A stretch of 52,245 nucleotides of DNA, counting the filler, from Ginglymostoma cirratum (Eukaryota), in assembly GCA_024137785.1 (NCBI GenBank). It is 2 parts of 2 records of this genome, joined end to end, with 100 filler letters (N's around TTAATTAATTAA, not from the genome) between each part and the next. Parts side by side here need not be neighbours in the genome. Positions count along the whole stretch, not along the records: positions 1 to 25,198 come from JAHRHZ010000062.1; 1 more part is not named here. The stretch is one strand, 5' to 3'. Both the position numbers and the translations under genes were made by a program. Of the stretch, positions 1,450 to 25,080 are shown one piece after another. Numbering within the stretch: position 1 is the first letter of the stretch; every line of letters begins with the position of its first letter. The notes below the pieces were generated by a model. The model was not told the DNA's origin. It made no database searches and saw only the letters and a list, made by a program, of their open reading frames with translations.

Positions 1450-1960
1450 ATTACAGTTAAGTGCCGTTTACAACAAAACGCTAATCATGATAGCACTTCT
1501 GAGGGTTTGTTATCCTGAGATTGTGCACTTCCTTTAAAAACTTGGTGCTACATTATTTAAGTTTTAGACATAAGAGTCCAACCCAGAGAAGGTTTGCCTA
1601 TAAATCTCAAATAGTTTCTACAGAGCATGGGTTGTACCATAATTCTGTCCTCAAACTGCAGTTTTTTTTTAAAAAATGCATTTGTTGCCATGATGTACAA
1701 ATTCGAGAAAGAAAACTGTTGCATCTGTTAATCATAGTGTACTCTTGTACTTAAGATTTTTATGTTGGTTGAAGACCACAACGGTAGAATCTCAAGTTTA
1801 TATAGTGCTTTTAAACCAAAGAATATCCCAATGAGCTAAGATAACTTGACAGAGAGTACTGCTCTCAACATCCGTTAGTTGGATTTATCATGTTCAATTG
1901 TTCAAAATTTGCCAGTATTTAAATCAAATTATTAAGGAGCACTGAAAATGCAGAACATAC

Positions 1961-2268
1961 CTAAACAAGCAGAACGTATGTCTTCTCTACAATATCATTA
2001 GTTTTAAGGTGCCGAACTTCACAAGTGTACTCTGTTCTGCCTTCAACTACGTCAATAGGCAAACTTGTCACTGTAGAGTAAAGCCCCTTCTCATCGATTT
2101 TGGGTGTTTCTGTGTTTTTCTCATCCTTGCATTCTGTCCATCCCTTGCTCCAAACAACCAGTATATCCATGGGACAAAAATGGTCAATCTTGCAATAAAG
2201 AGTAGCCTTTTCACCCATTTTGGGATGAGCAGGTTGACACACTATTTCTGACACTTCAGGAGTCACAG
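1961..2268 (-). CDS. Post-TM IgC1 domain 6, last coding exon
   Basis: Acceptor tttctcatag|CT. AVTPEVSEI...LYCKIDHFCP...VWSK...KGLYS...YTCEVRH...YVLLV followed by TAG. Confidence 0.9.
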
Positions 2269-3459
2269 CTATGAGAAATGCCGAAACAAAATGTAAGTTT
2301 TCAAAGATTCCAACTGTAACCAGAGACCATTTAAATAAATTTGTATTTATATTAAAGGCTTAAGTGATTTTTCAGTAACTGCTCAAGTTAAATAGTTATG
2401 TTAAGTAGTATCATATGTTTACAATCAAAGTATATAGAAAAGCTAGTTTAAATTCGTACTAACCTGATAAAGCAAATGCTTCTCTCTTCAACCAATAGTT
2501 TATGTTGTAATAATAAGTAAGGATGTTGTTGCTCACTGTCACACACAAAGGTCAGCAATTTCTGATGTCCACGCATGTCTAATTAAATAGGGAAATCTGG
2601 AAGATGCTGGTACCCCTTCACAGACTGCACTGGTGCAATCTTTGCTAATCTGCACATAAATCACTGTCATCCCACATGCTGAGCTAGTTACCCACTATTC
2701 TCACCTCCTTCTGTCATCCTTACCTTACCTAGTCCAGCCTATATGTGACTCCAGATCTGCAGCAGCGTGGTTAACTCTCAACTGGCTTCTGGGCAATTAC
2801 AGATGGGGAACAGATGCTGGCCTAGGCATCGACACCCACATCCAATGAATGCATAAAAAAGCTTTTAGCATGCCAACATTTTCACCCATTTTTAATCAGG
2901 AATTACTGAATTGTAATGATATACCAAGTGGTAGTCACCACTCAGTGTTCTATCTGACACTGATAATTTTACAAGTTCAGAGTTTCATTTTTCTCAAAAT
3001 AAAATTAATAGTGCAGATTTTTTTTTGAAAACAGTTTCTATCTTCACATTTTTTATGTTAATCCTTTATTTCTGCCTAAATCTTTGTTTTTGTTTCTTGT
3101 ATGATTTATGTGAATTATATTTCCTTTTTTAAATAAAACTTGCGCTTTGCTGTCAGCATGTGCTGGTGATAATCCTTCAATGTGATCAATTGAACAGCCT
3201 CTGTTAGTTGGCTGGCTCACAAATGTCCCCAATTCCCTGTAGACAACACCCATTTCTAACAATGCTAGAAGTGATAACCCAGCTAAATTTTTATGAGCAA
3301 CTGTATGCAAGGTGAATGCCAAAACCTGTTCATTCACTACTCGGTAAGATAGAGAGCAGTGTCTTTGAGGCAGCATTATACTTTTATTTTTACAGAAATT
3401 ATTAATCAAATTAGGATTTTCTAAACATATGTAAACATCAGGGCACAAGATCCACTTAC

Positions 3460-3771
3460 CTTGGAGGGGCAGGTGAATAGCTCGTTTAAATGTATCACCT
3501 TTGTCATTGTCTTTATACTGAAGGAATAATTCTCTTTCAAAGTCTTCTGCAGTCACAAAAAATTTCAGACACGCATCTACCTTGTAAGTGTTTTCCGAGG
3601 CAAGTATAGGCTTTGTTTTTGTGACTCCATTGTTAATTAACTGAGATGCTTTGTACCATTCAACTGTAACATTTGGATGGGAAATTCCAGAAACTGAACA
3701 GGACACAGATAAGTCCTTTCCATATGAAGGGTTCTCTGGCTCTATCGTGAACACTGAAAATTTGGGTGAGC
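3460..3771 (-). CDS. Post-TM IgC1-like domain 5 (divergent, no F-strand Cys)
   Basis: Acceptor tgtttatag|GC and donor CAA G|gtaagt; 312 nt, phase 1-1. SPKF...VSCSVSG...EWYK...ENTYKV...ELFLQY. Confidence 0.85.
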
Positions 3772-4454
3772 CTATAAACAGAGAAAAAATGACATATTTA
3801 ATAGACCCACAAAGCCAAAGTAAGTCACTCCTACCTACCAATAAGCTTTCTTCATTTCAACTTTGCAGATTATGGATATTTCTGACAAGGCGATCATTTG
3901 TTATTCACCATCAACTAGTGACAAGCTGCAGCATGTAGGTTTCCTTTGTATTGTTAAGTAAGGATTTCAGGATTTTATCCGGTTGTAATGAAGGAATGGC
4001 ATTAAATATCCAAAAGAAAGAAAAGTGACAGTGCAGTCTATGTACACTCTGTCCTGTCCTTCTAGGTGCTGGGCAATCACAGGGTTGGAAAGACAGTTGA
4101 AGAGGCCTTGGCAACTTTTGCAGTGCTTCTTGTACATATACATACCACAGCCACAGTATACCAGTGATGAAACAGTGTTAGTTAACAGTTCTGCTGAATA
4201 GGGTGCCAGCCTAGTAGCCTGTTTTAGCTTAGAGATTCTTTAGTTTTGCTACAGCATCATCAATACAGACGTGGACGGTATTCATTCGCACAATGCTGAC
4301 AGATGCCTTCTAGGTGGTGGTGAAGCTCTGGGAAATGACTCAAGTACTCAACTGCATGTCCAGCCTCTGATGTTATTACTGGCTATGACATTTACGTGGC
4401 TGATCATGTAGAGTTTCTGGCTGCTGGTCATTCGCTGATATTTATGGTGAGGAT

Positions 4455-6130
4455 TCAATGATTTGATTTGATTTGATTTATTATTGTGACATGTACCAAG
4501 ACACAGTGAAAAGTAGTGTTGTACATGCTAACCGAATAAATCATACCGTAAATAAATTTACCAGTGCAATAGAATAGAATGCAAAATATAGTATTACAGC
4601 TACAGAGAAGGTGCAGAGAAAAATCAACGCTAATATATGAGAAATCCATTCATAAATCTAATAACAACAGGGAAGAAGCTATTCTTAAATCTGTTGGTAT
4701 GTGTTTTCAAACTTTTGTATGTTCTGCCCAATGGAAGAGGGTGAAAGAGAATATAACCAGAATGGGAGGGGTGTTTGATTACGTTGGCTGCTTTCCCAGG
4801 GCAGCAGTATGTGTAGGTGGAGTCAATGGAAGGAAGGCTGGTTTTCCTGATGGACTAGCCTGTGTTCACAACTCTCTAATTTCTTGCAGTCTTGGGAAGA
4901 GTAGTTGCCATACCAAGCTGTAATGCATCAGATAGGATGCTTTCTATGGCGCATCTATAAAAATGGGTAAGAATAATTGTGGACATGCCGAACTTCCTTA
5001 GCCTTCTGAGGAAGTGAAGGCATTGGTGCATTTTATTGACTAGTGTCGACTTGGATAGACCAGGACAGTTTGTTAGTGCTCCTTCATTTTGCTGATATCG
5101 AGGGACAGATTGTTTTCTTTACACCATGCCACTTAGTTGTGCGTCTCCTTTCTGTACTCTGTCTTATCGTTTGAGATCTGACTCAATACGGTGGTGTCAT
5201 CAGCAAATTTGTAAGTGGCGTTAGAGCAGAATTTGGCCACAGTCATGAATGTATACGGAGTATAGTAAGGGGCTGAGTTTGCAGCCTTGTGGGGCACTGG
5301 TGCTGCGGGTTATCGTGGAGGAGATGTTGTTGCCTACACTTACTGATTGTAGACTGTGGGTCAGGAAGTCGAGGATCCAACTGCAGAGGAGTTGCAGTGT
5401 TCTAGATCTCAGTGCTTTGAGATGAGTTTAGTTGGAATTATGGTGTTGAAAACACAGCTAAAGTCAATAAATAGTAGTCTGACATAGGTATCCTTGTTAT
5501 CCAGATGTTCCAGGGATAAAGCGTAGGGTCAGGGAGATGGTGTCTGCTGTGGACCTACTGTGACAGTAGGCAATTTGTATCAGATCAAGGTGGTCTGGGA
5601 GTTGATGTACGTCGTTACTGACCTCTCGAAGCACTTCATAATGATGGCTGTCAAAGCCACTGAGCAATGGTCATTAAGGCACACTGCCGGATTTTTCTGT
5701 AGCACCGGGATGATAGTGGTCTTCTTGAAACAAGTGCGAACCTTGTATCACAGTAAGGAGAGGTTAAAGGTATCTGCAAATACTTTCACCAGCTGGTCTG
5801 CACAGGATCTGAGTGCACAGCCAGGGACTTTATCCCAGTCAGTCACTTTCTGTGGGTTCATCCTCAAGAAGGCTGATCTGACACCTGAGGCGGTGACTAT
5901 GGGTACACGTGCACCTGAAGCTGTTGGGACAGGTGACATCATTTCACTGAGCCTCTGTTCAAAACGAGCAAAGAATGCACTGAGTTCATCGGGGAAGGAT
6001 GCACTGTTATCAGCGATTCTACTTGACTTCACTTTGTAGCCTGTTATATCATATAAGCATTGCCCACAGTTGACATATGTTCATAGGGTTAGTCTGGTAT
6101 TGTCTCTTGGCATCCCTGATGGCAAGGATG
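4455..6130 (-). mobile_element. Rex1/Babar-type LINE fragment (RT and 3' tail)
   Basis: ORF 5748-6032 reads PDELSAFFARFEQ...VPGCALRSCADQLVKVFADTFNLSL. An (aatca)n-like tail lies at 4460-4480. Homologous to 45990-46730 (+) and about 14090-14370 (-). Confidence 0.8.
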
Positions 6131-6313
6131 ACAATGCCATTGCATTATAAGAGGTCTTGGTTAGATTTCCCCTTCACATCAGATATTAAACGTACGAGTC
6201 AGAAGTAAGCAAACCTTTCCTTGTTCATACATACTTTGCTCATCTTCACAAGCCAAAAGTGAAGCAGAAAAAGTTACTGACATTGACTAACTGTTGCATG
6301 ATTAGGATACTTC

Positions 6314-6647
6314 GAATCATAGAATCCCTACAATGTGGAAACAGCTATTCGGTCCGTTGAATCCACACCGACCCTCTGAAGAGCAGCCCACTCAGACCTA
6401 CACCCCTACCCTATCTCTGTAACCCTGCGTTTTCCATGGCTAATCCACCAAACTGCACATCACTGGACACTTACGGGTAATTTAGCATGGCCAATCCACC
6501 TAACCTGCACATCTCTGTGGGAGAAAACCCACGCAGACATGGGAAGAACGTCAGTGTGGAGTTTGCACAGTCGCCCAACGGTGGAATCAAACCCAGATCC
6601 CTGGTGCTGTGAGGCAGCAGTGCTAACCACTAAGCCACCATGTCACC
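6314..6647 (-). mobile_element. HE1-type V-SINE
   Basis: tRNA-derived head (minus strand: gtggcttagtggttagcactgctgcctcacagc), V-core tctgcgtgggtt and a CR1-like tail. Confidence 0.8.
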
Positions 6648-6859
6648 AACTTCACAATAAAAAAATTAAAAACAATTACGTGTGACAAATTCAGTTATTC
6701 TTATTCAGAACAAAGAAGGGGACAGAAATATATAATGGTACAATTTAAATGTTTTAGCATTTCAAGTACAATTCAATTAAACCTTTTGATAAGTCCCAGC
6801 GGATTAGAAAACACCTTTGTTTAGAAAAAGAAGGAGACAGCTAGCTTGATATCTGTTAT

Positions 6860-8150
6860 TGGGAACATGTATTATAAACATTTATTATAAAGGATGTGAT
6901 AGCAAAACATTCAAGCAGAGTCCACACAGTTTCCTGATGGGGAAAATCGTGTCTGACAGAATTTATAATTATTGGATGAGAAACAAGCAGGAGAGGAAAA
7001 AAAAGCGGAAGCAGTGGATGTAATATATTTTTACTTTCAGAAGGCATTTGATAAGGTACCACATCTATTGAATAAGAGCCCATGATTTTAGAAGTACCAT
7101 ATTAGTACGGACAAAGGATTGACCATCTAACAGAAGACAATGTTGGATAAGAGGACATTTTCAGGATGGCAACCTCTAACTAGTGGTGTGCCACAGGGAT
7201 AAGTGCTGAGGCCACAATTATTTAAAATATATATTAATGATTTGGATGAGGTAAATGTTTATACTACAGCCAAGCTGGCATATAACACAAAATTGGTGGG
7301 AAGGCAAATGATGAGGAAAACAGAGTCTGCAGAGGGATATAGACAAGTTAAGCAAGTAGGGTACTAACTTGGTGGCTGGAATATAAAATGGGGAAATAAG
7401 AGGTTAGTCAGGAGGAATAGAGATACTGAATACTATTTTAATGGTGAAAAACTGCAGAAAGCTACAGAACAGAGGGTTTTGCGAGTCCTTGTCCATGAAT
7501 CACAAGAAGTTAGCATCCAAGTTTGGGGGTAATAGAGAAAGCAAATTGAATGTCTGCCTTCATTTTAAAGGGAATGGAGTATGAAAGTGTGAAGATTTTG
7601 CTAAAACTATACACAGCATGAGTCAGACCACTGCTGGGATACTGTGAACAGTTTTGTGCTTCTTATCTAAAGAAAGATGTACTTGCATTAGAGACAATCC
7701 AGAAAAGGTTCATTGGGCTGATACCAGGTATGGAGGGTCTATCTTAAGAGAAGAGATTGAATAAATTGGACCTGCGATTGTTAAAATATAGGAGAATGAG
7801 AGACGACCTTATTGAAACATTGAAGAATCATATGGGACTTGATAGAGCAGATGCCAAAGGCTATTTCACCTCGTGGGAGAGTGCAGCACAAAACAGCATA
7901 ATCTTTAAACATCAATTTCTTCCGAGGGTAGCGATTCTGTGGAATTCTTTACCAGAGAGGGCTATTGAGTCTTGGTCATAAAGTATATTCAAGGCTGAGT
8001 TAGGCAGATTTTTAATCAGCAAGGAATTAAGGGTTATGGGGCAAAGGCAGGAATGTGGATTTGAGGATTATCACATCGATCTGATGCAATGGTGGAACGG
8101 ACTCAATAGGGTGAATGGCCTACTTCTACTCCTATGTCTTATAGTCTTAT
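6860..8150 (+). mobile_element. CR1 LINE, degenerate 3' part
   Basis: Remnants of GKSCLT, FQKAFDKVPH and SGVPQG, plus the tail tggcctacttctactcctatgtcttat. Confidence 0.8.
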
Positions 8151-8184
8151 TTCATTTAAATCAAACAGAATACTTTTAACTCAC

Positions 8185-8511
8185 CTTTAAGGGTTAGCTG
8201 GAAGTATTTTTTAATTGGTTTGGTTGAAGATTTTGAATGGCAAACTTCGACTCCATATTCAGCTTGATGATCATCTGTACTTGGTGTTAAAGTTACCATG
8301 GTGACTTTGCTGTGCAGACCATCTTCACAGGATGATTGTTCCTGAATTTTTTCATGTCTTACATTAGTGTTAATTCTCACCTCATTTCTGAACCATTCAA
8401 CTTGAATATCATCTGGATAATAGTCACTTATAGTACAGGTTAAAGTCAACTCTTTCTCTGCTTCAGGGATGTCAGGATTGCACGTAATTTCAGATACTTT
8501 AGGATGGGATA
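8185..8511 (-). CDS. Post-TM IgC1 domain 4 (F-strand Cys replaced)
   Basis: Acceptor attttag|TA and donor AAA G|gtgagt; 327 nt, phase 1-1. HPKVSEI...LTCTISDYYP...EWFRN...YGVEVCH. Confidence 0.9.
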
Positions 8512-9815
8512 CTAAAATCAAGAGAAACATTAAGAAAAACATTTTTCTGGTTTTCATTTCAGACATTAGTACCAAAAATTATATAACAAACTATTTTAAA
8601 TTTATTCAATTAAGTAATTGGAAAGCAACAAATATGTGGGCTACTAATACTAATTATTACATTTATATGCAGAAAAAAAACTTAGTAATTTATGTTAACT
8701 CAATTCTCTTGACTAGTTTATTACGACAAAACCTCACAAAAAATATTTCCTTTCCAAATAAAAGTTGCATTTTAGCACCAGAATAGCTCAGCTTCTAAAG
8801 AAACAACGTTATAAGCTCAATCATCCTAAGAACTGTCACCAGGATATTGGCACATCACCTGAAACTGGATGGCACTAACCCCTAACACTGCATTTGCAAG
8901 CTATTCAAAAATGCCAGTTGTGTTTTACCTAATTGCAAACAATGGCTGTAGATACAGTAAAGTAATTTTACTACTTATACATTTAGAAATGTCATCAGAG
9001 AGCGAAAAAAATTGCTTTTCTGTAATAACATAGCATTAAAATGATAAAATACAGCATTATTGCTTGAACGTCACTTTTAATGAGACATGGGCATCACTGG
9101 CTGTGTCAGCATTTATTGACCCTCTCTCAACTGCCCAAGAAAGTAGTGGCGAGCTGCCTTCTTGAACCTGTGCATTCATTGTGCTGTAAGTGGTCCTACA
9201 ACCTCATTGATATTTTTGAGAAATAAGGTAGTGCGCTCGTCCCTGCCATTTCTGTGATGCTAGATCTATCTTTAATTTGACCAGTATAACAATGTAACTA
9301 AACTTTCTTGCACACAATTTTGTCCTTTCACCCGTTCCTCTTCGCCTGCAGTATCTTACATGCGGCTTTTCAATGTTTAAAATTTATAAGCAAGTGATCT
9401 AGAGAACATAACGTCACAAAAATACACCACTAATATTAAAAGGTTATTTCATTTTGATGACAGTGATCTAATTTTACCATAGAGTGAGTAATATGGCAAA
9501 TCAGTATAACTTGTGTCTTAGCTGGAATTCTCTCCTAATCACTAAAAAAAAAGTGAAATTATGTTACAAACCTATGTGGGGTGGTTACAAAGTGACCCAA
9601 CCATTCTGTATCATTAAAATGCACCTAAATTCCAGTGACACTGTTCTGCACAGTAAAAGCAGCTGACTGACTCTAAAATGCAAGCATCCTGGCCGGGGAA
9701 ACAATATTAATTTCAGTGAATACTTTATAAGAAATCTGAAACCAATATAGTTGACTTGTAAATAAAACAAACATTTTTATATTGCAGAAAGGCTTTTAAA
9801 TAAGAATAAACCTAC

Positions 9816-10124
9816 CTAAATTTTTAGGAATATATTCTGCAAATCTTGGATACAGAAGACTCTCGTGATCAATCTGGCATTTATATTTACTCTGTTGGTC
9901 TGATAAGGTTGGAGTAATTGTAAATGAACTGGTAAATTCGTGCAACCCATGCTCTGAATTTAGATCAGTTTTAGGTGTTTTTGATTCCACTATAACATCA
10001 TCTTTCAACCAATGGACAGTAATACTTTCAGGATAAAATGAATGCACTCTGCAGGTCAAAGTCAACATTCTTCCAATTATAGGGTTCACAGGATCACTTA
10101 AGATGGCATCAAGAGAAGGAAAAG
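9816..10124 (-). CDS. Post-TM IgC1 domain 3
   Basis: Acceptor ttttccag|CT and donor TTA G|gtaggt; 309 nt, phase 1-1. LTCRVHSFYP...HWLKD...YKCQIDHESL. Confidence 0.9.
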
Positions 10125-10884
10125 CTGGAAAATATAACATGTTAGAACATCACCTCATACATACATTCACATATATATTGCCTGTTATGAAGAACTCTCA
10201 TTTTCAGTGATGGCTAGGTAGAGTACTTCTTAATCAAATTGTGGCTCCATGACTCGACATATTATTCTTTCATCTTTGGTAACTAGATTTTAAAACATTT
10301 AAAATGTTAGGATTAATGTAACCCATTTTAATGGCTAACAAGGATCCTACACGAGCAAACTTAGAGTTATCTCAATACAACTTTTAGTGATCTGGGATCT
10401 AAAGTATAAATCTGCTGACGCACTGAATAATTTCACCCAGAGGGGACATGACAGATAACTAATTTAAGAAATTACCAGATTACAATAGTTGGTCACAAAC
10501 TCTTGACTGAAAATTTGGAAGTGCTTAATCCTAGAATGGAAATTTGTGCTGTTTTCTAGTATTGAAATTCTTCACATCGATACAAAGAAACATGAATTAG
10601 GAGCCGCAGTATACCAATCAGCCCCTAGAATCTGCTCTGTCATTTCTTAAGATCATTGCTAATCTGTTGTGACCTCAACTCTGCTTTCCCCACATTCCCA
10701 TACGCTTTTGACTCCCTTGTCAGTCAAGAATCTGTGTAACTTTGCCATAGAAATATTCAAGGACCTTGCCTCCACTGTGGAAGAGAATTCCACCAACTCA
10801 TGACCCTGAGAGAAAGAGGAAAGACGATCTCACATTTTAAGAGAGACTGAAATTTTGTCTTTAAAGAAGTGTTTAATGCGTTAC

Positions 10885-11247
10885 CTTTTACATTCAGTTG
10901 AACCTGTTCCTCTAATGGATTGCTCAAGCCAATGTGCTCAACTGCACAGAAGTACTGACTTTTATCTTCTTCTTGGATTGTTGCATTAAAACGTATTGTG
11001 CTGTAGACACTAACAGTGTGGTCAGAATAATTATATCCACTCGTATAATGGGAATATTTATCTGGAAACATATTTTCTTCATTTGCATTGTCGAAAACCA
11101 GCAAAGGGGTTTTCTTTCCATGCATATTTTTATACCATGTGATCTTTAGAGGGCGTGGCTTGAAAACAGTTACTGGACAAGTCAGCATCACAGAACTGTT
11201 GTGCAGCACCACAGGCGGCTTAATTATGTGAGCCAACTTAGGAGGAA
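10885..11247 (-). CDS. Post-TM IgC1 domain 2
   Basis: Acceptor ctcttcag|TT and donor AAA G|gtaacg; 363 nt, phase 1-1. PPKL...LTCPVTVFKP...TWY...YFCAVEHIGL. Confidence 0.9.
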
Positions 11248-11549
11248 CTGAAGAGGGAAAAGAACAAAAAAAAACAGTTTTAATTATATAGAACTTCTAA
11301 ACATTACAGTTTTTTTTTTAAACCCATACATTTTTCATCAAAACAAATGCGATCAAAAACAGTGTTGTGACTATTTATTTAAAGCCTTTCTAGTGCTCTT
11401 TGGAAATCATTCAAGTGGTCTGCTCTCCATCCTAACCCATGCTGGAGTTCTTGTTTGTCTTTCAGTTGTACTAATTTGAAGACATGGTAAAAATGCCATT
11501 CTAAATTCGGGAAAGGCAAAATGTAACAATGTCACCCAGAGCCCAGTTC

Positions 11550-14500
11550 ATAACATGGGAGCAGTAGGAAACAATTCAGTCCCATAAGCCCATTCTGTCA
11601 TTCAATTAAATCATGGCTTATTTGAATCTTAAAGTGATCCATTTATCCTGGCTTCACAACCCACTTCCTACAACAGTGATTATAATTATTAAAGTACTTC
11701 TGAAGTATAAAGTGCCTTGGCATGTCCTTAGATTGTAGAAGTTGCTTTCTTCCAATACCCTTGCCTAGCAAAAACACGTCAAACTCAATTTGGAAAAGTT
11801 TTGACTTGACCTAACCTCATGCAAACAAGGAACAAAAGGAGGCATGTCAGCCCTTTGAGGCTGCTCAGCCATTCAGTAAGATTATGACTGACCTGATTTT
11901 AAACTCAACTCCACATTCCTGCATATCACTGATGATTACATTAGGGATGAAAAATTAAGTATATATCTTGCTCTGTATTAAAAACACTTGTGATCCTGTA
12001 ACAATTGCCTTTTGAGGAAGGTTATTCCAAAGGCACTGAACCCTCAGAAGGGGAAAAACAAAGTTTCTTCATGTCTGTTTTAAGTATACAACCTCTTACT
12101 CTTAAACTATGACCCCTTGTTCAAGATTCTACCACAAAATGAAACATCTTTTTGACATCAACCTGGTCAGATCCCTTCAGGGTCTTATATGTTTTAATCA
12201 AGTCATTTCTGATTTTTCTTTACCCCAGAGCATAGCTTTTCTCCCACAAGGCAATCCGGTCAATACAGGTATTGGTCTAGAAAACCTTCTATGAACAGCT
12301 TCCAAATCATTAACATCCTTCCATAAACATGGTGACCAGTACTGTACACACTACTCCAGATGCCAGTACCTGTACAGCTGAAATACTACTTCATACTCTT
12401 ACATTTAATCCCTTCATAATACAACAGTACATTCTATCGGCTTTGATTCCTTGCTAACATTTTGTGATTCATGCATTAGGACGCCCAGATCCCTCTGCAC
12501 CTCAGAGCTCGGCAACCTTTCAGCATTTAAGTAATTTTTTTATTCTTTCCGCCAAAATGGACAATATAACACTTTCCTACGTTTTCCTCCATTTGACAGA
12601 CCTTTGCCCAATCATTTAATCTATTTATATCTCTTTGTATGCTTAGATCCTCTTCACAACTCACCTCCTTATATATCTTTGCGTCACCAGCAAGTTTAGC
12701 TGCCATAACTTCAATCTCTTCATCAAAAACATTTAAAAGTTGAAACCTCAGCACTTATCTCTAAGTACATCACTTATGATATCCTGCCGGCCTAAAGAAG
12801 ACCTGTTTATTCCTCCTCTCAACTTCCTGATAACCATGCAATCTTCTATCCATGCTAACGTTACCCCTTTTTCATGAGCTCTTATCTTCTGCAATGGCCT
12901 TTGACATTTTTTTTTTAACCTTAATAAATGCCTTTTGGAAATCTCAGTGCAATAAATCAATGGGTTCCTCTTTATCTAAAACCCAAGATACTTCCTCAAT
13001 AAAATTACTTAAACATGATTCCTGTTGACAAAATCATGTTGGCTCTGCCTGATTACCTTGAACTTTTTCATGTGCCCTTATGACAGACATTAAGCTACCA
13101 GGGTTGTAGTTTCATATTTTCTGACTCCCTCCCTCTCTTTTTGACTAAAGGAGTTACACTGGTTGTTTTCTAATATGAAGGCATCTTCCCTGAATCCAAT
13201 GAGTTTTCAAAATTAAAACCAATGCATCAACCATCTCAAAATTCCTACAGTGTGGAAGCAGGCCATAGGGACCATAGAGTCTTCACCGACCCTCCAAACA
13301 GCATTCTACTCAGATACGTTCCCGCACCCCAACCCTGTAAGCCCGAAATTCACACGGCTAATCCACCAAGCTTACACATCCCTGGACCCCGGACAATACA
13401 CAGCAATTTAGCATGGCCAATCGACCTAACCTGTACATCTTTGGACTGTGGGAGGAAACCAAAGCACCTGGAGAAAGCCCATGCAGACACACGGAGAACA
13501 TTCAAACTCCACACAGACAGACACAGTCACCCAAGGCTGAAATCGAAACCGGGTCCCTAGCACTGTGAGGCAGCAGAATTAACCACTAGACCACTGTGTC
13601 GCCCTAACTACATTTTTTTAAAACATTAGGATGAAATTGATCAGAATTTGGGGCTTGTCAACTCACACTTTCAATAATCAGTCTAATCAAATTAATATCA
13701 GTTCCAACAACTAACTCAGTCCTACCTCCCTGGTAATTGCAATTTTGAGTTCCTCTCCCCTTTTCAATTCCTTATTTACAGCTATTTCCAGAGTGTTACT
13801 TGTACGCTCTTCATTAGAGAGAAATCAAAATACCCTAATTAGTTTCCTGCCATCCCTTTATCCTCCCTTCCTAATTCCCCAGACACATTTGCTACAGGAC
13901 AAACTCTTATTTTGTTAGTGCTTCTCTTTGTTTTTTATCTGAAAAAAAAATTCCTGTTTGTACTATTGGCTAACTTTCTCTCATTGTCATTTTTTCCCTG
14001 CTCATTAAACATTTAGTAATTCTTTGTTGTTTTTAAATATTTTTGCAACCTGCCAGCTCCCTTTGCAGAATTATGTGCCTTTTCTTTGAAGTTGATTTGA
14101 ATTATTATTGTCACATTGTTTTGCATTTATCCAGACAAATCATACCTTAAATAAGTAATAGAATAGAATGCAGAACATGGTGACACAGCTACAGAGAAGG
14201 TGCCCTAATATGAGAGGTCTGTTCACAAGTCTGAAAAGAGGGGAAGAAGCTGGTCTTGAAGCTGTTGGTATGTGCTTTCAACTTTTGTATCTTCTGCTTG
14301 ATGGAAGAAGGTGAAAAAGTGTATAACTGAGGTGGGAGGGGTCTTTGATTATGTTAGCTGCTTTCCCAAGACAGCGATACTATGTTTGACCTTTTTTAGT
14401 AACCATGATGGACGGTCCATCCCACAAAATTTTTTTTTTTTTTTATTTGTTGGAAAGTACATATTCTTCAATCAGTATGTTATGGCATTGGTCAGACAGC

Positions 14501-15265
14501 AGGCTACACTAAACCTTCTGGAATATCCCTGTAAATGTTTGCCACTGCATCTCTATGACCTTAACGTATATTGTAAGTTCACTTTCGCAGGCTCTGCATT
14601 CATACCCTCCTAAGTGCCCTTGTTCAAACTCTCCCTTAAACTGTATGCTAAATTCAATCATATTCTGCCCACTGCTACCCAAGGGAACTTTCACTATGAG
14701 ATCAATAATTAATCCTATCTTGTTGGTCAAAACCAGGTCCAGTACAGCCTGCTGTCGGACTGGTGTCATAACATACTGATCAAAGAAAGTATCCTGAAAA
14801 TATTCAATGAATTCCTCCTATAGACTACATTTTCTCACTTGATTTTTTTTCGCAGTCTATATAGTATGTTAAAATCCCCTACAATAATTGCTGTACTGTT
14901 TTGACAACCTTCCATTAGTTCTTCCTTGAAACCCTGTCCTACCATGTCATTACTGTAAGTGCACCTGTACACAATACCCACAAGCAACCTCTTACCTTCA
15001 CTGTTCCTCATCTGTACCCAGACTGCTTCTATATCCTGGTTTTCTGAATTTAGGTCATTCCTATCTATTGTGCTAAGATTATTTGTAATCAACAGAGCCA
15101 CTCCTTTCCTACCTTCCTGTTCTTCCTAAACATCAAATGCCCTACAATATTCAAGTGCCCATCTAAAGGAGTTACATTCGCTGTTTACAAATTTGAAGGA
15201 ATCTTCCCTGAATCCAATGAGTTTTTGAAAATTAAAACCAATGCATCAACCATCTCACTAGCTAC
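11550..15265 (-). mobile_element. Nested CR1 LINE fragments (RT and endonuclease) with SINE and Rex insertions
   Basis: Endonuclease remnants VLDLVLTN and IIVGDFN; RT remnant QRDINRLNDWAK. Confidence 0.75.
13240..13604 (-). mobile_element. HE1-type V-SINE inserted in CR1
   Basis: The minus strand begins gggcgacacagtgg...ctgcctcacagtgctagggacccgg and has a V-core tttcctcccacagtccaaagatgt. Confidence 0.85.
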
Positions 15266-15723
15266 TTCAATATTGAGGTCCCAATCTAGGTGATCCTAGA
15301 TCTCAGTTATAGCCACTAGATTGTATTTATTATCTGAATTAGTACCACTAGTGGATCTCTTTTATTTCAACTGCTAACAGCTATTTGGGGAAAGAGTTAG
15401 AGATTTAAATTCCAGCCCTATTTTTCCAAAATTCCAGGATCTCTTTCATATGAAGGGAAAAATACCTTTTTTTTAAAAAAAAATTTTTTGTCACAGCGTC
15501 ATCTCCAGTTACATGCCAGCAACAGGAATATGATATTGCAAATATGGTAGAATGGAGGCAGAGACAGGACAGACAGATACAATACAACACTCTTAGAAGC
15601 TCATTTGCATCATCTGCCATGATGGCAGTGGACACTGTAATTGTGATCAATTAGAACATTAGGGTCCATATGTTCTACTTCACAGAATTATGTCTTTTGA
15701 TCGATTCATTAAAAGAAACTTAC

Positions 15724-16146
15724 TTCCACCAACATGGAGTTTGATCTTTTTACAAATGGCTTCACTGTTAGATGGATGCATCACCTTACATGTGATTTCT
15801 GCTTCATTGTCCATAAAAATGTCAGGATAAATCTCGAGAACGCTGGAAATGCTGAAAGTTCCATCATCACTTTTCTGGATACTGCCAGCCCTGACTTTCC
15901 AATCATCATCAGTTTCATTCCTTTTTTCAGCCTTTTCTATTTTCTTAGCCTTGCTCAAAGGGAAACGGAATACGTTGTCTTCCTGCCATTCAGCAATCAA
16001 CTTCATTTCAGCATCTTTCAATCTCTTCAAATACCAGGCAATAGTAATAACACTAGGTTGAAATCCAGACACTTGGCAAGTAAGTTCTGCAGGTTCTTGG
16101 TGTATAATTTGCACAGGTTTTTGAATTTCTGACACATTTGGTGCAA
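15724..16146 (-). CDS. Post-TM IgC1 domain 1 (with charged insertion)
   Basis: Acceptor ttcctag|TT and donor GGA A|gtaagt; 423 nt, phase 1-1. VAPNVSEI...LTCQVSGFQP...AWY...DDGTFSISSVL...ITCKVMHPS. Confidence 0.9.
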
Positions 16147-17686
16147 CTAGGAATTGAAAAAGAATGTCAAGTAGGATTTTTTCACATGATCTTTTGCACT
16201 TCCTGAAAATTCTTACCAATTTTAAAACTTGTCTCAATTGATTGTAAAATTGATTGTTATTTGTTTTAATTCTCACGTTTAAGTTTCACTGAAGTTTGCC
16301 AAAAACCACCATAAAAGTTACAACACCAATAGCTCTCTTATGGAATTATTCAGTCAGAACAGGGACTTTTGTAATTAGTATCCATTAAGTAAACTGCTCT
16401 TTACACTAACACTAGAATGAACTGCTTGCATACTTAGATTCACACAATGTGGCATGTGTTTGAATTAAGTGATTATGGGAGGGTGGAGTGTTTTTCTGAG
16501 AGTGAGAAATGGCATTTTTAATGAAGAACAGAGTTACAATTTCACTGCACCAAGTGCATGCAAAACATCTTCTATGGTAACTTAGAGTTTACAGAAAAGG
16601 TAGTGATACAGTAAACAGGGGACCACAAAAATAAACAGGCAAAGTGCAAAACAGAACTTCAAAAAAAAAAGCAATTAAAAAATGTTCTCTGAAAATGTGT
16701 GATTTCAACAGAGTCAAGGGCAACAATGCTGCAGTTCAAAATAATATTTAGAAGTTTACAGATGAGGGGGATAAAACAGCAACAGAACAGGGAACTAAAG
16801 AAGGAACTCATACAACGGCACAGGAAAGAAATTGCAAAATAAAACACAACTACTTGATTTTAAAAACGAGCAAATGAGAAATGACAAAAATAATCATGTA
16901 TCTGCACTCAAGGATACAGAATGGTTTCGCCATGTCAAAGGATCTGAAGGTCAACTTGAAGTTGTGCTTTCTATTTTTGGTAATGGAGTAAATGTGGACC
17001 ACACTCTAAAACATAACTCAAGTTACCAGAACAGCTCAGCAGCTACAGAGACCTTATCTGATACCATTCACATTAGCAGAAAAAAAAAACTATATTTTGG
17101 AAAAATTATTAACTAATTGAAAGCAAGATCCTCATTTCCTCTTAAGAAGTGGATTATTTTAAATGAACGATTAGTACTTTTGAACTTCCCTTCCCTTTTA
17201 AACAGTAAAGAATCCATTGACTGTAAACTCCAGAATGTATTGGGCAATTGCTATCAGCAACATCAGTACAAGATCAAAGTATGGTAAGTCAGCACAAATG
17301 TTAGGGTGGAGTAACAGAAGTACTCTGCAGCAGCAAAGAAAAAGTTAGATGAGGAGTTAATAAAGGTAAAACAAATATACCAAGCAGAGCACTTATGAAA
17401 CTATCCAAATTACACATTTCATTTTTAGCTTGCATTTTAATTAAACACTCTTTGTTGGCAGACTAATCGTTTCCATTTAATAACGACTATCATAACGTGA
17501 AAACAGAAAAATTAAAGGGTAGCAAGTTTGAGATTTCATTGGCTGAATCTATGACTTTGCTGCAACAGCAGCTCTTTCAATATTCTGCCTCCCAACCCAT
17601 AAACAACCTTCCTTTGAGGCAATTTGCTCCAGATTTATCTCCCAAAGTGTCTGAAATAGCGCACAAGACCCAGAATGTGGCTTTAC

Positions 17687-17803
17687 CTTTATAATAGAAT
17701 CGCATATAGAAATAAATTCCTAGTCCGAGTATAAGAACAGACGTAATGATGCTCCCAATGATGCTTCCGATTATTGAAGCTTTGGACAAATGAATTTCTG
17801 CTT
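17687..17803 (-). CDS. B7-H6-like Ig gene: transmembrane exon
   Basis: Acceptor ttcttttgcag|AA and donor AAA G|gtaaag; 117 nt, phase 1-1. EAEIHLSKASIIGSIIGSIITSVLILGLGIYFYMRFYYK has a hydrophobic span of about 25 aa followed by R/K. Confidence 0.85.
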
Positions 17804-19126
17804 CTGCAAAAGAAAAGTTACATATTTCTTACACTTAACTATTTTAATAGTTCCACTAGTGAAATACTGTATTATTGTGTGAAGTATAATAAAGAAATAC
17901 TTACCTCAATTCTGGGCAAACCAATTAATATTCACAAAAACAAGGTACTAATTTTTACACATGTACATCTCATTGTTTTAAATCCAGTTGTAATACTTGG
18001 AAAACAGGACATTTCTAATGGAAGTGCATTTGCACAAAAATCAATGTAGAATCAATGTTACTCATAATTTGCATTTCTTCAATGTCACCGATTCAAAAGC
18101 TTGGTCCTCCCTTCCTAAAGTCATTGTGGGTCTACCTACAACAAATGGACTGCAGGGGTTTCAGAAGGCAGCTCACCACCATTTTAAAGGCAACCAGGGA
18201 TGGACAATAAATACTGGCTCAGCCAGCACACTGACGTTTCATGAATACATTTGAAAGAAAACTGATGCTTTAGGATGAGGAATAAGAAACTTCAAATCAA
18301 AATTTGCAAATGATATAAAACAGTAAGCTTAGCTGACACTAAAACAAAATGCAACAGAACATCAAATCTAAAAACCTGAAGAGCAGATTGTTACCTGACA
18401 CCAATAAATATAATGAACTCAACTGAACAAAAATACAGAAATGTCACCTGCAGTTTATTTCTTTTAAATGGAGTGAAAGTACAAAGGGATCCAGGGAAAT
18501 AGGTGAACAAATCAAATCAATGAAAGCAGCATGGGAACAAAACTATTAAATGTGTCAGGTAAACCATGGGATTGGTTTTAGAGATGGTACATTTGTTAAA
18601 TGTGTATTGGAACCTGGTCATGCTGCATGCAGAATGCATAGCTCTGGTAGCCTATTACAAGAAAGGATGTAGAAGTACTATAGAAAGTGTAAAGTATGTT
18701 TACAATCATGGTAACAGAACTGAGATCACATTAATTGAGAAAAGATTGAATAGGTTGGGGCCTTCACCTTTCAAAAAACAAATACTTACAAGTGGCCTTA
18801 AAGGAGTCTTTAAAATTATAAGCGGTTCCGTCAAGGTAGAAATGGAAACAATATTTTCACTTGCAGGAAGTGAAAACTAAGAACCACAGTACAAGGAAGT
18901 GACTAATAAATCGAATGAGAAAATAAATAAAATTTCTTCGGTCAAGAAAGTGGTTGGTATGGAGGAACTCTCTGCCACAGCAAGTGAGACAGATAACAGG
19001 TGCTTTTAAAAAGGCAACTAGACAAGTACACAATTGAAAAAGCTAAGAAAATATATAATTAAAAGGGCGCGCTAAGGCAGATAAAAATGGGAGAAAACTC
19101 ATGTGGTTACAAATACTAATAGTATT

Positions 19127-19801
19127 CAAGGTTTTTGAGAAGATTTGTAGCTCGGGTCGTTGACTTGCTTATCGAGCTGGTAAGTTTGTTTGCAAACATT
19201 TTGTAACCATGCTAGGTAACATCATCAGTGCACCTCGGGTGAAGCGTCAGTGTTCTGTCCCACTTGCTATTTGTGTCTTGGTTTGTTGGGATGGGTGGCA
19301 TCACTTCCAGATTTGTTTCTTAGTGATTGGTATATGGGGTCCAGCTTGACATGTTTGTTTGTTAATGGAGTTCTGGTTTGAGTACCAAGCCTCCAGGAAT
19401 TCTCGTGCATGTCATTGCTTGGCTGGTCCTAGGGGGATTATATTGTCCCAGTCGAATTGTTGTTCCTCTTTGTTCATGTATTGAAATGAGATACACGTGG
19501 ACAAAGAGGGACACTAATTCGACTGGGACAACGTGGCCAAGGAACGACACGCAAGACATTTCTAATGGAAGTGTGGCACTCAAATCAGAACTCCATTAAC
19601 AAACAGGTCAAGCTGGACCCCATATACCAATCACAACGAAAGAAATCCGGAAGTGATGCCACCCACCCAACAAACCAAGATACAAATAGCAAGTGGGACA
19701 GAACACTGACGCTTCACCAGAGGTGCACTGGTGATGTTAACTAGCATGGTGACGAAATGTTTGCAAACAAACTTACCAGCTCGGCGAGCAAATCAACAAC
19801 C
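19127..19801. mobile_element. Penelope-like element arranged as a long inverted repeat
   Basis: Arms at about 19155-19480 and 19491-19801 are reverse complements. Both carry GIY-YIG C-terminal remnants (FDWDN...EFLEAW.SNQNSINK...LDPIYQ). Flanks actaatagtatt/actaacattatt (10/12 match) suggest a target-site duplication. Confidence 0.85.
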
Positions 19802-20598
19802 ACTAACATTATTGTTCAGCCATTTGGCTTCACTTAGTGCTGTATACCATATTTAATTTTAAACTTTAAACATTTTCATTAAAATTGATTCCAATCTATG
19901 GGAACAATCATTGGCTACTTTTCCACCGGAAGGATTTGTTAACACAATTAAATGGAAAATTAAAATCTGTTAAACAAGGTACAATTAAACTTTTTCCAAG
20001 AATCCTGAAAAGTCGTCAAATCACATGTATGGCATAAATAGGTATTTAGTATGGAATAGGTGTCTAATTCATTAGATTGAACACAAATAACGCAGGCAAG
20101 CCCCAGTTGCAAACGTGTTCCATTCTGGAGTCCACAAGTCAAATTGCTTGCAAGTCGGAACACAATGGAGGGCAATTGAAAACAGCTTTTGTTACAGGAA
20201 GGGTTCACATGTCAGGTCTTTAAAATTAAAACCACATGTGGGATGGCACTTGTAAATATGAGTATTCTAATTCAGGGACTACCTGTACTTAAAACATATA
20301 ACACGCACAAAACCATAGTAAAGTAAGAGTTATTACTCACAATATATATGAAATCTAATTTGCTCACATTTATAGAAGTTAATCGAGTGTTATGTCAAGT
20401 TAAAATGATTTGTTAAAATAAATTTTAAAAACACAAGGAAGTTAAAATTTCACTAGCCTGTCAGTATCAAATGAATCCATTCCAAAAGCTTCACATTTGA
20501 TTATGTCCCCAAGAAAAGTTAGAAGTTAAAATGAATTTAACCAAAATGCTTTAGACTTAGTATTTTAATAAAGAAAAGCTAAAATTATTGCAACTCAC

Positions 20599-20925
20599 CT
20601 TTCAAAGTCACCAAAGCTTCTACTTGGTATGGTTTTGTAAAAGACTTATGAAAGACACGGCATGTGAAAGTGCTGCCAATATCTTCTACTCCAGGCTCTA
20701 ATCTAACTTCAGTGCTTATGTTACATGATCCATCAGGGTTTTTGACTGGTGGGGCAATGCAAATATCAGTCAACACTTTTGGTTTTCCTTGTGCTGGGGT
20801 TGTCTGCAACCATTCAGTATTGCTTTCACAAGGATAATATCCACTTAACTGACAACTTAAAGCCATCTCGCCACCTGTTCCAACTTCCACAGTTTTTTCT
20901 GAAGTCACTGTTACTGTAGGTTGTG
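20599..20925 (-). CDS. B7-H6-like Ig gene: membrane-proximal IgC1 exon
   Basis: Acceptor ttttggtag|CA and donor AAA G|gtgagt; 327 nt, phase 1-1. AQPTV...LSCQLSGYYP...EWL...NPDGS...FTCRVFHKSF is a C1-set domain of the B7-H6/tapasin type. Confidence 0.92.
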
Positions 20926-22567
20926 CTACCAAAATACAAAGGGTATGTTAGTATCACTAATAATTGCAACTATACTTCAAAACTAATGCATTGATTGGAT
21001 CTATGCACAGTGAAGAAACAGCAGAGCCATTATTAAATAAATATATCTCAGTTAACAAACACCAATAAACGAAACAGTGCCACAGAACTACAGGACAAGT
21101 AATAAGGTTCTCATGTTTAGAAAGGAAGCTCACAGGTGGCTGAGTGGCTAGCAGAACATATAGATTAGGAGTTACAGATCAGACAGGCAAACAGTGAGAC
21201 ATGGTGTTCCTCAGAGACTGGCATTGGAGCCACTGTTGTTTATAATTTACACTAGCAATTTGTACTCTGGAACCAGAAATACAATTTTGAAATTTGCAAA
21301 TGACAGTGCAAAAAATAGAAAATGAAGGATGTGTCTAAAATATATGTTAATGAACTTGCATCCAAATTAACACACAGGAAATGAATTCAGATAAGTATCA
21401 GATTGCATTTTAATAAGAACACAGGGCCCACATACAGGCGAGATAAAATCAAAGTGGGATAGAGGAGAAAGAGGTTTTGGGGCTTGCAGACAATCATTAA
21501 AAGGCCACATCTCAAGCACTGAGATGCATTTCTATAAATTTAGAATTGTAAAAGTGTGTTAAATTTGCATAGTAATCTGATAATGATCTCATTTTGAGTA
21601 ATGTGTCTATTTCTGGTTTCCACATTATAAAAACAGAAATATTCACAAGGATGCTACTGAAACCGAGAGGTTCTAAACAACTGGAAATACATAACAGACC
21701 TTTTTTCCCCAGAAGTGTGAACGCTAAAGGTGACGTGATAAATGTCTTCAACATAACAAAAAGTTCCATGTAATACTGTTGGAGGTATCATCATTCAGAT
21801 CAGACAATAAACCAACACCCCAAGTTAATAAAGGGGCTATTTCGAAAACGTGCAGTGGGACTTAACTACTGCATGGCTAGTTGAAAAATGAAAAGAATTT
21901 GTTATTAATTCCTACTATTGTAACAGTTGTGGTGTGTCAGAAGGAACAGATGGCCCTGGCACGCAAGTGAAGGAGAAGGAAAATCTCTAAAATTCCCTTT
22001 CACCTCTGCTGGGAAGAAAGCTGCAAAAATGCTTTCTAAACTTTAACCTTAAATGCTACATTCTTAATCACAGATTGTATAGGCATCTTCACCAAAATAC
22101 ATTTTCCCTCCCCACAAACTCAAGCACTTTACTGAATTTGCTACTTTTGGTTCAGTCAGTAAATGCCGATTTACAATGCATCACGCAAATAAACTTTCCG
22201 TACCTGGTTGAGAATTGATAGTTCAGATAGCAACTTGTAAACACAGGCATTACTGGATCATTAATGAGCACACTGATATAATCAAAAAGTATTAAACACT
22301 AAGAGCAAACCATTTACTTTTTTTTTAAAAAATAACTTTTGATGACAGATAATCAGCCTGACACTTTAATGCTATTTTTGTCCTAAGATTTTGCCTGACC
22401 TGCTAAGTATTTCCAGCATTTACAGTACTTTACGTTTGAAGATATTTTCTTGGTAAGATTACATTTCCAAAGCTAAAAAGACATATTGTTAAAATATATT
22501 AAACTGATGGCATTGCGTTGCACTGAAATGTGGAACGATTTACAATACAACAAATAAATCTTTTTAC

Positions 22568-22921
22568 CTAAAACTTGAAGTGTTACTATCTTAGTCGCTT
22601 TATCATTTGGTGGAATGTAAACTTCGCATTGGTATTGTCCAGCATGTTTATAAACAACATCTTTTAGCAACAGTGACATGTTTCCACGTGTAATAGAGCT
22701 GCTCAATAGCTCTGCTTCTTTCCATTTCTCTCTTATTACTCCAGAAACGTAGACAAAAACATTTGATTTTTCAGCACCACTAGTGAAAGACCATAAAACG
22801 CTTGCGTTCTGCAGAGTCATTTTGGATCCGGTGAATTCAGCAATTTCGCATTCTAGAAGACCATTTTCATTACGTATTACTTCCACAAAACTTGGACTGT
22901 CTTTCAACGTCACCTTGCTTT
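22568..22921 (-). CDS. B7-H6/NCR3LG1-like Ig gene: IgV exon
   Basis: Acceptor ttttcag|AA with an upstream ctaac branch point and donor TTA G|gtaaaa; 354 nt, phase 1-1. V-set motifs LECEI...VLWSF...GNMSLLLKDV...HAGQYQCEVYIPP...LQV. Confidence 0.9.
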
Positions 22922-24965: not shown

Positions 24966-25080
24966 CCTGAGCAAATTTTAAAAAATGTACAGGGTTTAAA
25001 ATACTATTTTTGTTTGAAGTGGACAGATTACTGCATTTGAATGCATATCCCTTCTGGCATGGACTACATAATGAACGAGA

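Follow-up and report, generated by a model that had tools for sequence, protein, structure and literature searches.

C1-set domains mark the adaptive immunity of jawed vertebrates (antibodies, T-cell receptors, MHC and their kin). To our knowledge, all C1-set domains characterised so far function extracellularly or in the ER lumen. Human B7-H6 (NCR3LG1), the ligand of the NK-cell receptor NKp30, is a type I protein with V and C1-type domains, one transmembrane (TM) segment and a Gag-like tail of ~170 residues without Ig domains. Butyrophilins like BTN3A1 have a B7-like ectodomain of two domains, one TM and a large folded intracellular module. In BTN3A1, this B30.2 module senses a cytosolic ligand and signals outward. 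Integrin beta4 is a single-pass protein with a long tail of beta-sandwich modules: Its cytoplasmic FN3 repeats, typically extracellular modules, act as a scaffold. Titin and obscurin contain chains of Ig folds, often without the canonical disulfide, which work in the reducing cytosol. In cartilaginous fish, UrIg and UrIg2 have been described as non-rearranging V plus multi-C1 genes (PMC12227049). For nurse-shark UrIg2, the described order is a VJ domain, nine C1-type domains and, at the end, a TM/cytoplasmic domain (PMC12227049). As the TM follows all C1 domains, all Ig domains of UrIg2 are extracellular.

The gene reported here is located on the minus strand of a window (the whole stretch of DNA that was analysed, 52,245 nt including filler) from Ginglymostoma cirratum. 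All coordinates are window positions, and the gene piece extends from 22921 to 1961. A preliminary description had proposed nine minus-strand exons joined by phase-1 GT-AG introns to a frame of ~946 aa in the order V, C1, TM, 6xC1. An AG/GT scan reproduced these exons: All nine are open in phase 1, eight of eight introns have GT..AG borders, and the exon sum of 2840 nt together with one base from the leader exon yields 946 codons and a stop. The domain order was borne out by Pfam matches (V-set in exon 1, C1-set in exons 2 and 4-9) and by the hydrophobic exon 3. Exon 2 and exons 4 to 9 all score above the curated Pfam cut-off for C1-set domains (PF07654), which is 21 bits. The leader exon lies upstream of exon 1, outside the piece. 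The 25-kb piece does not contain any neighbouring gene.

A sawshark protein, P0002 (969 aa), matches all nine exons in order with 55-79% identity. Exon 1 (22921-22568, 354 nt, phase 1-1) encodes the V-set domain (Pfam 38 bits, 59% identity to P0002 residues 28-143) and was aligned to human B7-H6 over residues 17-115. The extracellular C1-set domain is specified by exon 2 (20925-20599, 327 nt, 28.4 bits, 79% identity to P0002). Exon 3 (17803-17687, 117 nt, 61% identity to P0002 residues 253-290) provides a connecting piece, the TM helix and the subsequent RFYYK. Thereafter, the post-TM C1 domains begin. D1 is encoded by exon 4 (16146-15724, 423 nt, C1-set 41.3 bits in two pieces) and carries a charged insert of ~35 aa between strands C and D/E, which is disordered in the AF2 model of P0002. 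D2 is encoded by exon 5 (11247-10885, 363 nt, 36.1 bits) and contains the family motif F-K-P-R-P-L. D3, D4 and D5 correspond to exon 6 (10124-9816, 309 nt, 51.3 bits), exon 7 (8511-8185, 327 nt, 47.1 bits) and exon 8 (3771-3460, 312 nt, 39.7 bits covering profile positions 1-66 only). The last C1 domain resides in exon 9 (2268-1961, 308 nt, 42.4 bits), where the TAG at 1963-1961 is directly followed by GTATGT and the G strand of the domain forms the C-terminus of the protein.

How does this protein compare with the described systems? The designation as B7-H6-like proved appropriate: It is backed by the superposition of the ectodomain, by sequence matches of exons 1 and 2 and by two NCBI entries for the same layout, from a snake and a frog relative, that bear the name NCR3LG1 (B7-H6). 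For the superposition, the AF2 model of the orthologue P0002 stands in for the window protein. Its modelled V-C1 ectodomain matches human B7-H6 (6yjp, 3pv6, 3pv7, 4zso) in Foldseek with a TMt (target-normalised TM-score) of 0.84-0.87, an rmsd of 2.7 A and 25-27% identity. In phmmer searches, B7-H6 was found with the V exon (E=0.019) and the C1 exon (E=2e-9), and other IgSF proteins score similarly. According to the model, the ectodomain has a B7-H6-like fold. In contrast to human B7-H6, the shark tail consists of six C1 domains and comprises ~680 aa. Butyrophilins offer the best functional analogy, but in the shark protein a chain of C1-set Ig folds takes the place of B30.2/SPRY. A search of the tails of seven relatives revealed neither B30.2/SPRY nor any other established cytosolic domain or motif, and Pfam did not detect B30.2 in the window exons. 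Membership in the butyrophilins was rejected because no exon and none of the seven relatives has a B30.2 (PRY/SPRY) Pfam match. Integrin beta4 belongs to an unrelated family whose tail has FN3 and Calx-beta folds instead of Ig C1, and a cytoskeletal link is not known for the shark protein. UrIg and UrIg2 resemble our gene in that numerous C1 domains, each in an exon of its own, come after a single V exon, and UrIg2 (PDB 9dmx) is among the sequence and fold matches. However, the shark gene analysed here has its TM after the first C1 domain and none at the end. UrIg/UrIg2 membership was rejected on account of this TM position, the C-terminus at the G strand and the absence of a J-like F-G-x-G motif from the end of the V exon. 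Among the Foldseek matches to the whole P0002 model, the titin fragment I65-I70 ranks second. In titin and obscurin, the Ig domains are I-set and part of soluble giant proteins, whereas here they are C1-set and tethered to a membrane.

The gene is not confined to sharks. Of the 150 best database representatives, about 80 (79-86) display the layout [V]-C1(1-2)-TM-(C1)3-13. They originate from chimaera, rays, sharks, bichir, coelacanth, lungfish, all three amphibian orders and a snake. Window exons 4-8 have their best matches in D1-D5 of chimaera, coelacanth, bichir and caecilian, which indicates positional orthology. F-K-P-R-P-L is found from chimaera to snake. With a mean pairwise identity of 27-34%, the post-TM domains equal the ectodomain (32-34%) in conservation. 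The TM exon with its small-residue motifs and its basic flank is likewise conserved from chimaera to snake. Apart from the two NCR3LG1 names, nearly all database entries for the layout are called 'uncharacterized'. The assumption that no characterised protein has this layout is in agreement with a literature search, blind to subscription papers, in which no description was found. We conclude that an ancient vertebrate family of B7-H6-like type I membrane proteins exists, for which we found no paper.

The best 19-mer of the TM exon has a mean Kyte-Doolittle hydropathy of 2.23. The helix contains a GxxxG motif, and RFYYK constitutes a basic stop-transfer flank. Within the family, K+R amount on average to 3.3 after the TM compared to 1.75 before it. 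A second TM exon, of which the preliminary description had not found any either, does not exist, since P0002 follows the nine exons from the first to the last and has an identical end point: The final 101 residues of P0002, C-terminus included, align with exon 9. None of the other hydrophobic exon candidates on the minus strand matches P0002. Furthermore, the last G strand is the end of the protein in the relatives from chimaera, coelacanth, skate and bichir, too.

The post-TM domains differ in composition from C1 domains outside the cell. The complete canonical Cys pair is found in 50% of them compared to 85% of the pre-TM C1 domains of the family and 95% of the domains in extracellular control arrays, i.e., C1 arrays with a C-terminal TM. 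The core Trp is retained in 94%. Losses of the Cys pair are position-specific and have been shared from chimaera to caecilian for ~450 My. In the window, exons 2, 4, 5, 6 and 9 encode the canonical Cys-Trp-Cys, and the F-strand Cys is absent from exons 7 (Val) and 8 (Leu). In D4, another Cys follows three residues after this Val, and the F-strand Cys is missing in 14 of 14 listed relatives of the same subfamily. D5 displays the pattern Cys-Trp-Leu, in other fishes Cys-Trp-Phe, and can therefore not form the canonical disulfide. Its equivalent in the P0002 model reaches a pLDDT of 85-94. Every post-TM domain in this model is all-beta (pLDDT 80-94). Sequons (N-x-S/T) amount to 0.74 per post-TM vs. 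1.46 per pre-TM domain, with an observed/expected ratio of 1.23 post-TM, still slightly above chance. Only one of six post-TM sequons is common to window and sawshark compared to two of three pre-TM sequons. Post-TM C1 domains contain 35% more Lys and 27% less Asn than pre-TM C1 domains; since related sequences are counted, P values of these domain statistics overstate independence.

Topology rules and family sequence statistics suggest that the six post-TM C1 domains are most likely inside the cell because they come after the sole membrane anchor. The similarity of the TM to a stop-transfer anchor, the loss of Cys pairs, fewer sequons and more Lys after the TM support this location. By contrast, the Cys pair in D2 and D3, both members of which are kept in every relative examined, would be compatible with disulfide formation and thus with an oxidising compartment. 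The following scenario can be envisaged: A signal peptide, as seen in the orthologue P0002, would direct the V-C1 ectodomain to the ER lumen, from where it would reach the cell surface. The GxxxG-bearing helix with its basic flank would halt transfer, and the remaining ~680 residues with six C1 folds, starting about six residues past the helix, would be made in the cytosol, where they would fold without disulfides. Our best guess is that the array might function as a rod-like protein-interaction scaffold. By analogy, it may couple the outside contact of the ectodomain, probably with an NKp30-type receptor, to inside partners. Alternatively, it could signal the inner state of the cell to the surface, with the butyrophilin B30.2 module and the integrin beta4 FN3 repeats as parallels. 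As a whole, we consider it probable that the locus is an expressed B7-H6-like type I gene with a cytosolic C1 array used as such a scaffold.

Other explanations have to be weighed against this one. Two neighbouring genes, one for V-C1-TM and one for a decaying C1 array, might have been joined by read-through, a chimera or mis-assembly. The missing F-strand Cys in exon 8, its displacement in exon 7 and a stop that is encountered ~40 codons on when the TM exon is read past its donor would be in line with such an arrangement, but it is hardly credible in view of the RNA. The joints 20599>17803 and 17687>16146 were seen in raw poly(A) RNA reads (X12; two and five reads, respectively) and in one spliced contig each in X1 and X2, i.e., in three runs from three studies. 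Beyond 15724, the X2 contig ends with the initial 30 nt of exon 5 (window positions 11247-11218) and thereby provides the joint E4>E5. Hence, RNA joints cover E2>TM>E4>E5, and exons 6-9 rest on collinearity with P0002. The RNA connection between 17687 and 16146 that the preliminary description had suggested to look for is thus documented both by poly(A) reads and by the contigs of two studies, and the idea of two separate genes fails because transcripts connect the TM exon with the downstream C1 exons. Read depth in the intron just after the TM donor is zero (bins 17261-17618), and no leader or V exon precedes exon 4. In addition, the order of the nine exons and the stop are identical in sawshark, the layout recurs in many classes, and the Cys-less domains are position-conserved and confidently folded in the model. 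The exons are one expressed gene, all but the leader exon within the piece.

The two other alternatives place the array outside the cytosol. On the one hand, the TM exon might be a cassette, which upon skipping would yield a secreted, entirely lumenal, UrIg-like V-(C1)7 protein, with the TM form being tethered, minor or regulatory and its tail having no function of its own. The exon has 117 nt and phase 1-1, so that the frame is preserved when it is skipped. The annotated Microcaecilia isoforms X1 (953 aa) and X3 (916 aa) differ precisely by the TM segment, which is missing from X3, and P0029 bears the post-TM hallmark motif without a TM. The invariant Cys pair in D2 and D3 and the fact that C1-set domains are otherwise known from lumenal or extracellular settings only point in the same direction. 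UrIg has been reported in the extracellular matrix (PMC12227049). However, a skip joint 20599>16146 was not reported: Both contigs and all junction reads include the TM exon. The TM is also kept in 32 of 33 annotated isoforms from nine gene sets and in elephant-shark UniProt V9K7L7. The conservation of the TM exon, its small-residue motifs and its flank as well as the lack of the canonical disulfide in half of the post-TM domains vs. 5% in extracellular C1 arrays also speak against a secreted protein, which we regard as unlikely. On the other hand, the hydrophobic segment might form a helical hairpin or fail to integrate, which would leave all eight Ig domains outside the cell and reconcile the C1-set type and the D2/D3 Cys pairs with an oxidising environment. 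The uncharged span is somewhat long (median 27, up to 42 residues) and rich in Gly and Ser, and AF2 predicts, with low confidence for the TM segment of P0002, a helix for residues 279-288 only. Yet 69 of 86 spans comprise 20-29 residues and are, therefore, too short for two helices; a segment of this kind with 19-29 residues counts as single-pass by established topology rules. A conserved central turn motif is lacking, 73% of the members have a basic cluster after the segment, and a hydropathy of 2.2-3.6 in the family is in the range of ordinary anchors. Hence, a hairpin appears quite improbable.

A conserved family, from chimaera to snake, carries 3-13 C1 domains behind the sole anchor of a B7-H6-like protein. 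If the cytosolic topology is true, C1 domains would be documented in the cytosol for the first time, they would represent a novel type of receptor tail, and they would give a hint at the B7-H6 tail before the mammalian Gag-derived one. It is conceivable, albeit rather doubtful, that B7-H6-type ligands have had cytosolic C1-set domains as their tail for at least 450 million years and that these domains act, similar to B30.2, as sensor or scaffold connecting the cellular state with the view of an NK-type receptor. Mammals would then have lost this tail and replaced it by the Gag-derived one, and the phase-1 C1 exons would be a candidate reservoir in early C1 history. Even if the protein were secreted, it would be an unusual mechanism to shift six Ig domains between lumen and cytosol by means of a cassette TM exon. 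The sequences of the relatives are already public, deposited as 'uncharacterized' proteins.

The gene of the B7-H6-like protein lies on the minus strand. An AG/GT scan for segments open in phase 1 returned exactly the nine exons of the preliminary description. Pfam assigns exon 1 (22921-22568) to the V-set and exons 2 (20925-20599), 4 (16146-15724), 5 (11247-10885), 6 (10124-9816), 7 (8511-8185), 8 (3771-3460) and 9 (2268-1961) to the C1-set, each above the curated cut-off, as had been claimed. Exon 3 (17803-17687), the TM exon, was recognized by hydropathy: It encodes a hydrophobic stretch of 26 residues that includes a GxxxG motif (best 19-mer hydropathy 2.23), after which the expected RFYYK is seen. 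All eight introns start with GT and end with AG. The exons sum to 2840 nt which, with one leader-exon base added, make 946 codons plus stop and so yield the proposed frame of about 946 aa. In the gene-bearing piece, tblastn with the 969-aa sawshark orthologue P0002 revealed neither the leader exon nor an extra exon. A second TM exon was also sought by a six-frame hydropathy scan, which delivered only non-coding-looking stretches, and was rejected; the scan, tblastn and the C-terminus of P0002 agree that the TM exon is the only one.

P0002, an 'uncharacterized protein' of Pristiophorus japonicus, was the second-best match of profile A1, which was built from the seven C1 exons and searched against 1.84 billion representative proteins (277 matches below 1e-30). 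Each exon was searched on its own, with P0002 as full-length proxy for the gene. It begins with a signal peptide and contains the counterparts of all nine window exons in the same order, one residue apart and with 55-79% identity; exon 9 corresponds to the final 101 residues of P0002. Because P0002 is collinear to the C-terminus, the exon 9 stop and the absence of a second TM are common to two sharks. In chimaera, coelacanth, skate and bichir, the relatives likewise end exactly at the last G strand, some of them after one to three more C1 domains than in the sharks. The TAG stop of exon 9 abuts GTATGT (1955-1963, minus strand), which resembles a former phase-1 splice donor. Since, in addition, some relatives have extra C1 domains, the terminal exon in sharks may once have been an internal one.

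RNA was mapped to 15650-21000 using two raw runs and contigs from two further runs. In a 1649-nt contig from run X1, exon 2 is spliced to the TM exon at precisely 20599>17803 and the TM exon to exon 4 at precisely 17687>16146. Identical joints connect the same three exons in a 1625-nt contig from run X2, which belongs to another study; past 15724 it continues with 30 letters identical to 11247-11218, the start of exon 5. In raw poly(A) RNA of run X12, 20599>17803 is covered by two reads and 17687>16146 by five reads with four starts. Thus, the junction 17687>16146, which the preliminary description had named as a check of the transcript, is present in reads and contigs. Just past the TM donor, the bins 17261-17618 have zero depth in every run, so here the TM exon does not act as a terminal exon by read-through. 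A reading as two genes, as read-through or as an artefact is contradicted and ruled out by the RNA joints together with the collinearity of P0002.

Within the introns, RNA reads and contigs match 16605-17149, 17807-18334 and 19051-19230 at 95-99% and run into sequence absent from the piece, with loose ends at 16669, 17807, 18116, 18196, 19132 and 19164. The word depth reaches its maximum of 250 in X1 at 19051-19229. Most likely, this RNA stems from expressed repeat copies of other loci. The loose end at 17807 is located four bases upstream of the TM-exon acceptor.

The name 'B7-H6-like' concerns the ectodomain. The V exon aligns end to end with human B7-H6 (E=0.019), and for the C1 exon 2 human B7-H6 is the best non-antibody match (E=2e-9). 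An AF2 model of P0002, built on the 20-sequence alignment A2, can be superposed on four crystal structures of B7-H6 across about 224 columns with a target-normalised TM-score of 0.84-0.87, an rmsd of 2.7 A and 25-27% identity. Judged by these matches and this modelled superposition, the name given in the preliminary description is fair.

The layout is not confined to sharks. Under strict criteria 79 of the 150 best representatives, and otherwise up to 86, share one arrangement: a V domain plus one or two C1 domains, then a hydrophobic segment near residues 230-350 and 3-13 further C1 domains. Another 16 have numerous C1 domains and, as their sole TM, one at the C-terminus; these were used as extracellular controls. 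Members were found in cartilaginous fishes (Callorhinchus, including UniProt V9K7L7, Amblyraja, Pristis, Narcine and Heterodontus), bony fishes (Erpetoichthys, Latimeria, Protopterus), amphibians (caecilian, newt and many frogs including Xenopus laevis) and the snake Pantherophis. Nearly all are named 'uncharacterized' in the databases; NCR3LG1 is the name given to the snake protein and to one frog protein. Window exons 4-8 find as best matches D1-D5 (post-TM C1 domains numbered from the TM), respectively, in chimaera, coelacanth, bichir and caecilian. Hence, the domain-by-domain orthology of the array predates the divergence of cartilaginous and bony vertebrates. Conservation of the post-TM domains equals that of the ectodomain. 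A homologue search with exon 6 alone gave no hit among proteins of similar length to the query.

A motif G-F-[KR]-P-[RK]-P-[LI], located in the first or second post-TM domain between its B-strand Cys and C-strand Trp, is kept from chimaera to snake (F-K-P-R-P-L in exon 5, 11120-11140, minus strand) and provides a handy signature for spotting family members. The frog proteins P0001, P0007, P0017, P0032 and P0035 form a second subfamily with V-C1-C1 before the TM, the flank Y-R-Y-R-Q-K-R-R-P-K and up to 13 post-TM C1 domains. Therefore, post-TM C1 arrays are not confined to one orthologue group. In P0001, there is in addition an acidic repeat tail of 250 residues, rich in Ser, Thr and Gly.

The hydrophobic segment resembles a normal single-pass anchor, with an uncharged span whose median length is 27 residues (20-29 residues in 69 of 86 spans). 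Family-wide, small-residue motifs occur in the first half and a basic cluster afterwards, with a mean K+R of 3.3 after the segment vs. 1.75 before. The flank, often K-[YF]-F-[KR]-K-V-P-P-K, is contiguous with strand A of the following Ig domain. Since the signal peptide is cleaved and no later hydrophobic segment exists, standard topology rules would place everything after the anchor in the cytosol. Of the cytosolic C1 array proposed in the preliminary description, the single anchor without a second TM thus stands, and the cytosolic side is inferred from topology rules, with support from statistics. These family-level statistics compare domains of one fold and are soft, because the compared sequences are related: Both canonical Cys are present in 50% of post-TM domains vs. 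85% of the family's extracellular C1 domains and 95% of those in the control arrays, Lys is enriched by 35% and Asn reduced by 27% compared to the family's extracellular C1 domains, and sequons (N-x-S/T) amount to 0.74 per post-TM vs. 1.46 per pre-TM domain. Window sequons common to both sharks number one of six after the TM vs. two of three before it. The core Trp is present in 94% of the post-TM domains. The Cys pair is invariably present in D2 and D3; the F-strand Cys is missing from every D4 and replaced by Phe in the D5 of fishes, and D6 is devoid of the B-strand Cys. This pattern holds from chimaera to caecilian, and window exons 7 and 8 conform to it; the sequence comparison indicates that the Cys losses are not random decay. 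In the AF2 model of P0002, all post-TM domains, including the disulfide-less ones, reach a pLDDT of 80-94. However, two observations speak against a cytosolic location: D2 and D3 retain both Cys everywhere, and post-TM sequons are not below chance.

At 15850-16000 (minus strand), exon 4 encodes about 35 residues rich in Lys and Glu, inserted between strands C and D/E of the first post-TM domain. Inserts occupy the equivalent site in the whole family, and the one in the AF2 model (P0002 residues 348-369) is disordered. In a cytosolic array, the insert would adjoin the membrane's inner face, and it is a candidate site for interactions.

The strongest alternative to a membrane-anchored main product is a secreted V-(C1)7 protein made by skipping of the TM exon, which at 117 nt and phase 1-1 can be omitted in frame. 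In Microcaecilia unicolor, the predicted isoform X3 (P0176) lacks exactly the 37-residue TM segment of isoform X1 (P0177), and the 1051-aa representative P0029 carries the hallmark motif of the post-TM part without any TM. Both point to in-frame skipping of the TM exon in the family. As main product, however, the secreted form is opposed by retention of the TM in 32 of 33 isoforms across nine gene sets, by the TM exon in both RNA contigs and all junction reads, and by the family-wide conservation of the anchor. At low depth, no TM-skipping joint was listed within 15650-21000. That the hydrophobic segment forms a hairpin is unlikely, as its lengths argue against it.

In the open full-text literature, no report of Ig or C1 domains behind a B7-family TM and no citation of these gene identifiers was found, in line with the expectation that the layout is not already described; a prior mention in subscription papers is possible. 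The known shark multi-C1 genes UrIg and UrIg2 carry their TM at the C-terminus (PMC12227049), whereas here it precedes the six-C1 array. The protein is thus rated as a B7-H6-like receptor whose tail has no known precedent. Proof of a cytosolic location would make this a new setting for the C1 domain.

Butyrophilins combine a B7-like ectodomain with a folded sensor inside the cell, and integrin beta4 uses extracellular-type beta-sandwich repeats as a cytoplasmic scaffold. By analogy with both, it may be speculated that the array is an interaction scaffold in the cytosol, linked to a recognition surface of the NKp30 type. In the long tails of seven relatives, a search for known cytosolic domains returned Ig families and no non-Ig domain.

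ORFs at 23861-24974 (minus strand), upstream of exon 1, resemble by eye LINE-type retrotransposon remnants; LINE-like ORFs also occupy 12527-12960 and 14835-15101 (both minus strand) and 7757-7981 (plus strand) in introns 4 and 7. Pfam matched only 24732-24974, weakly, to RVT_1, and none of three others that were scanned (E=3.7e-5, below cut-off).
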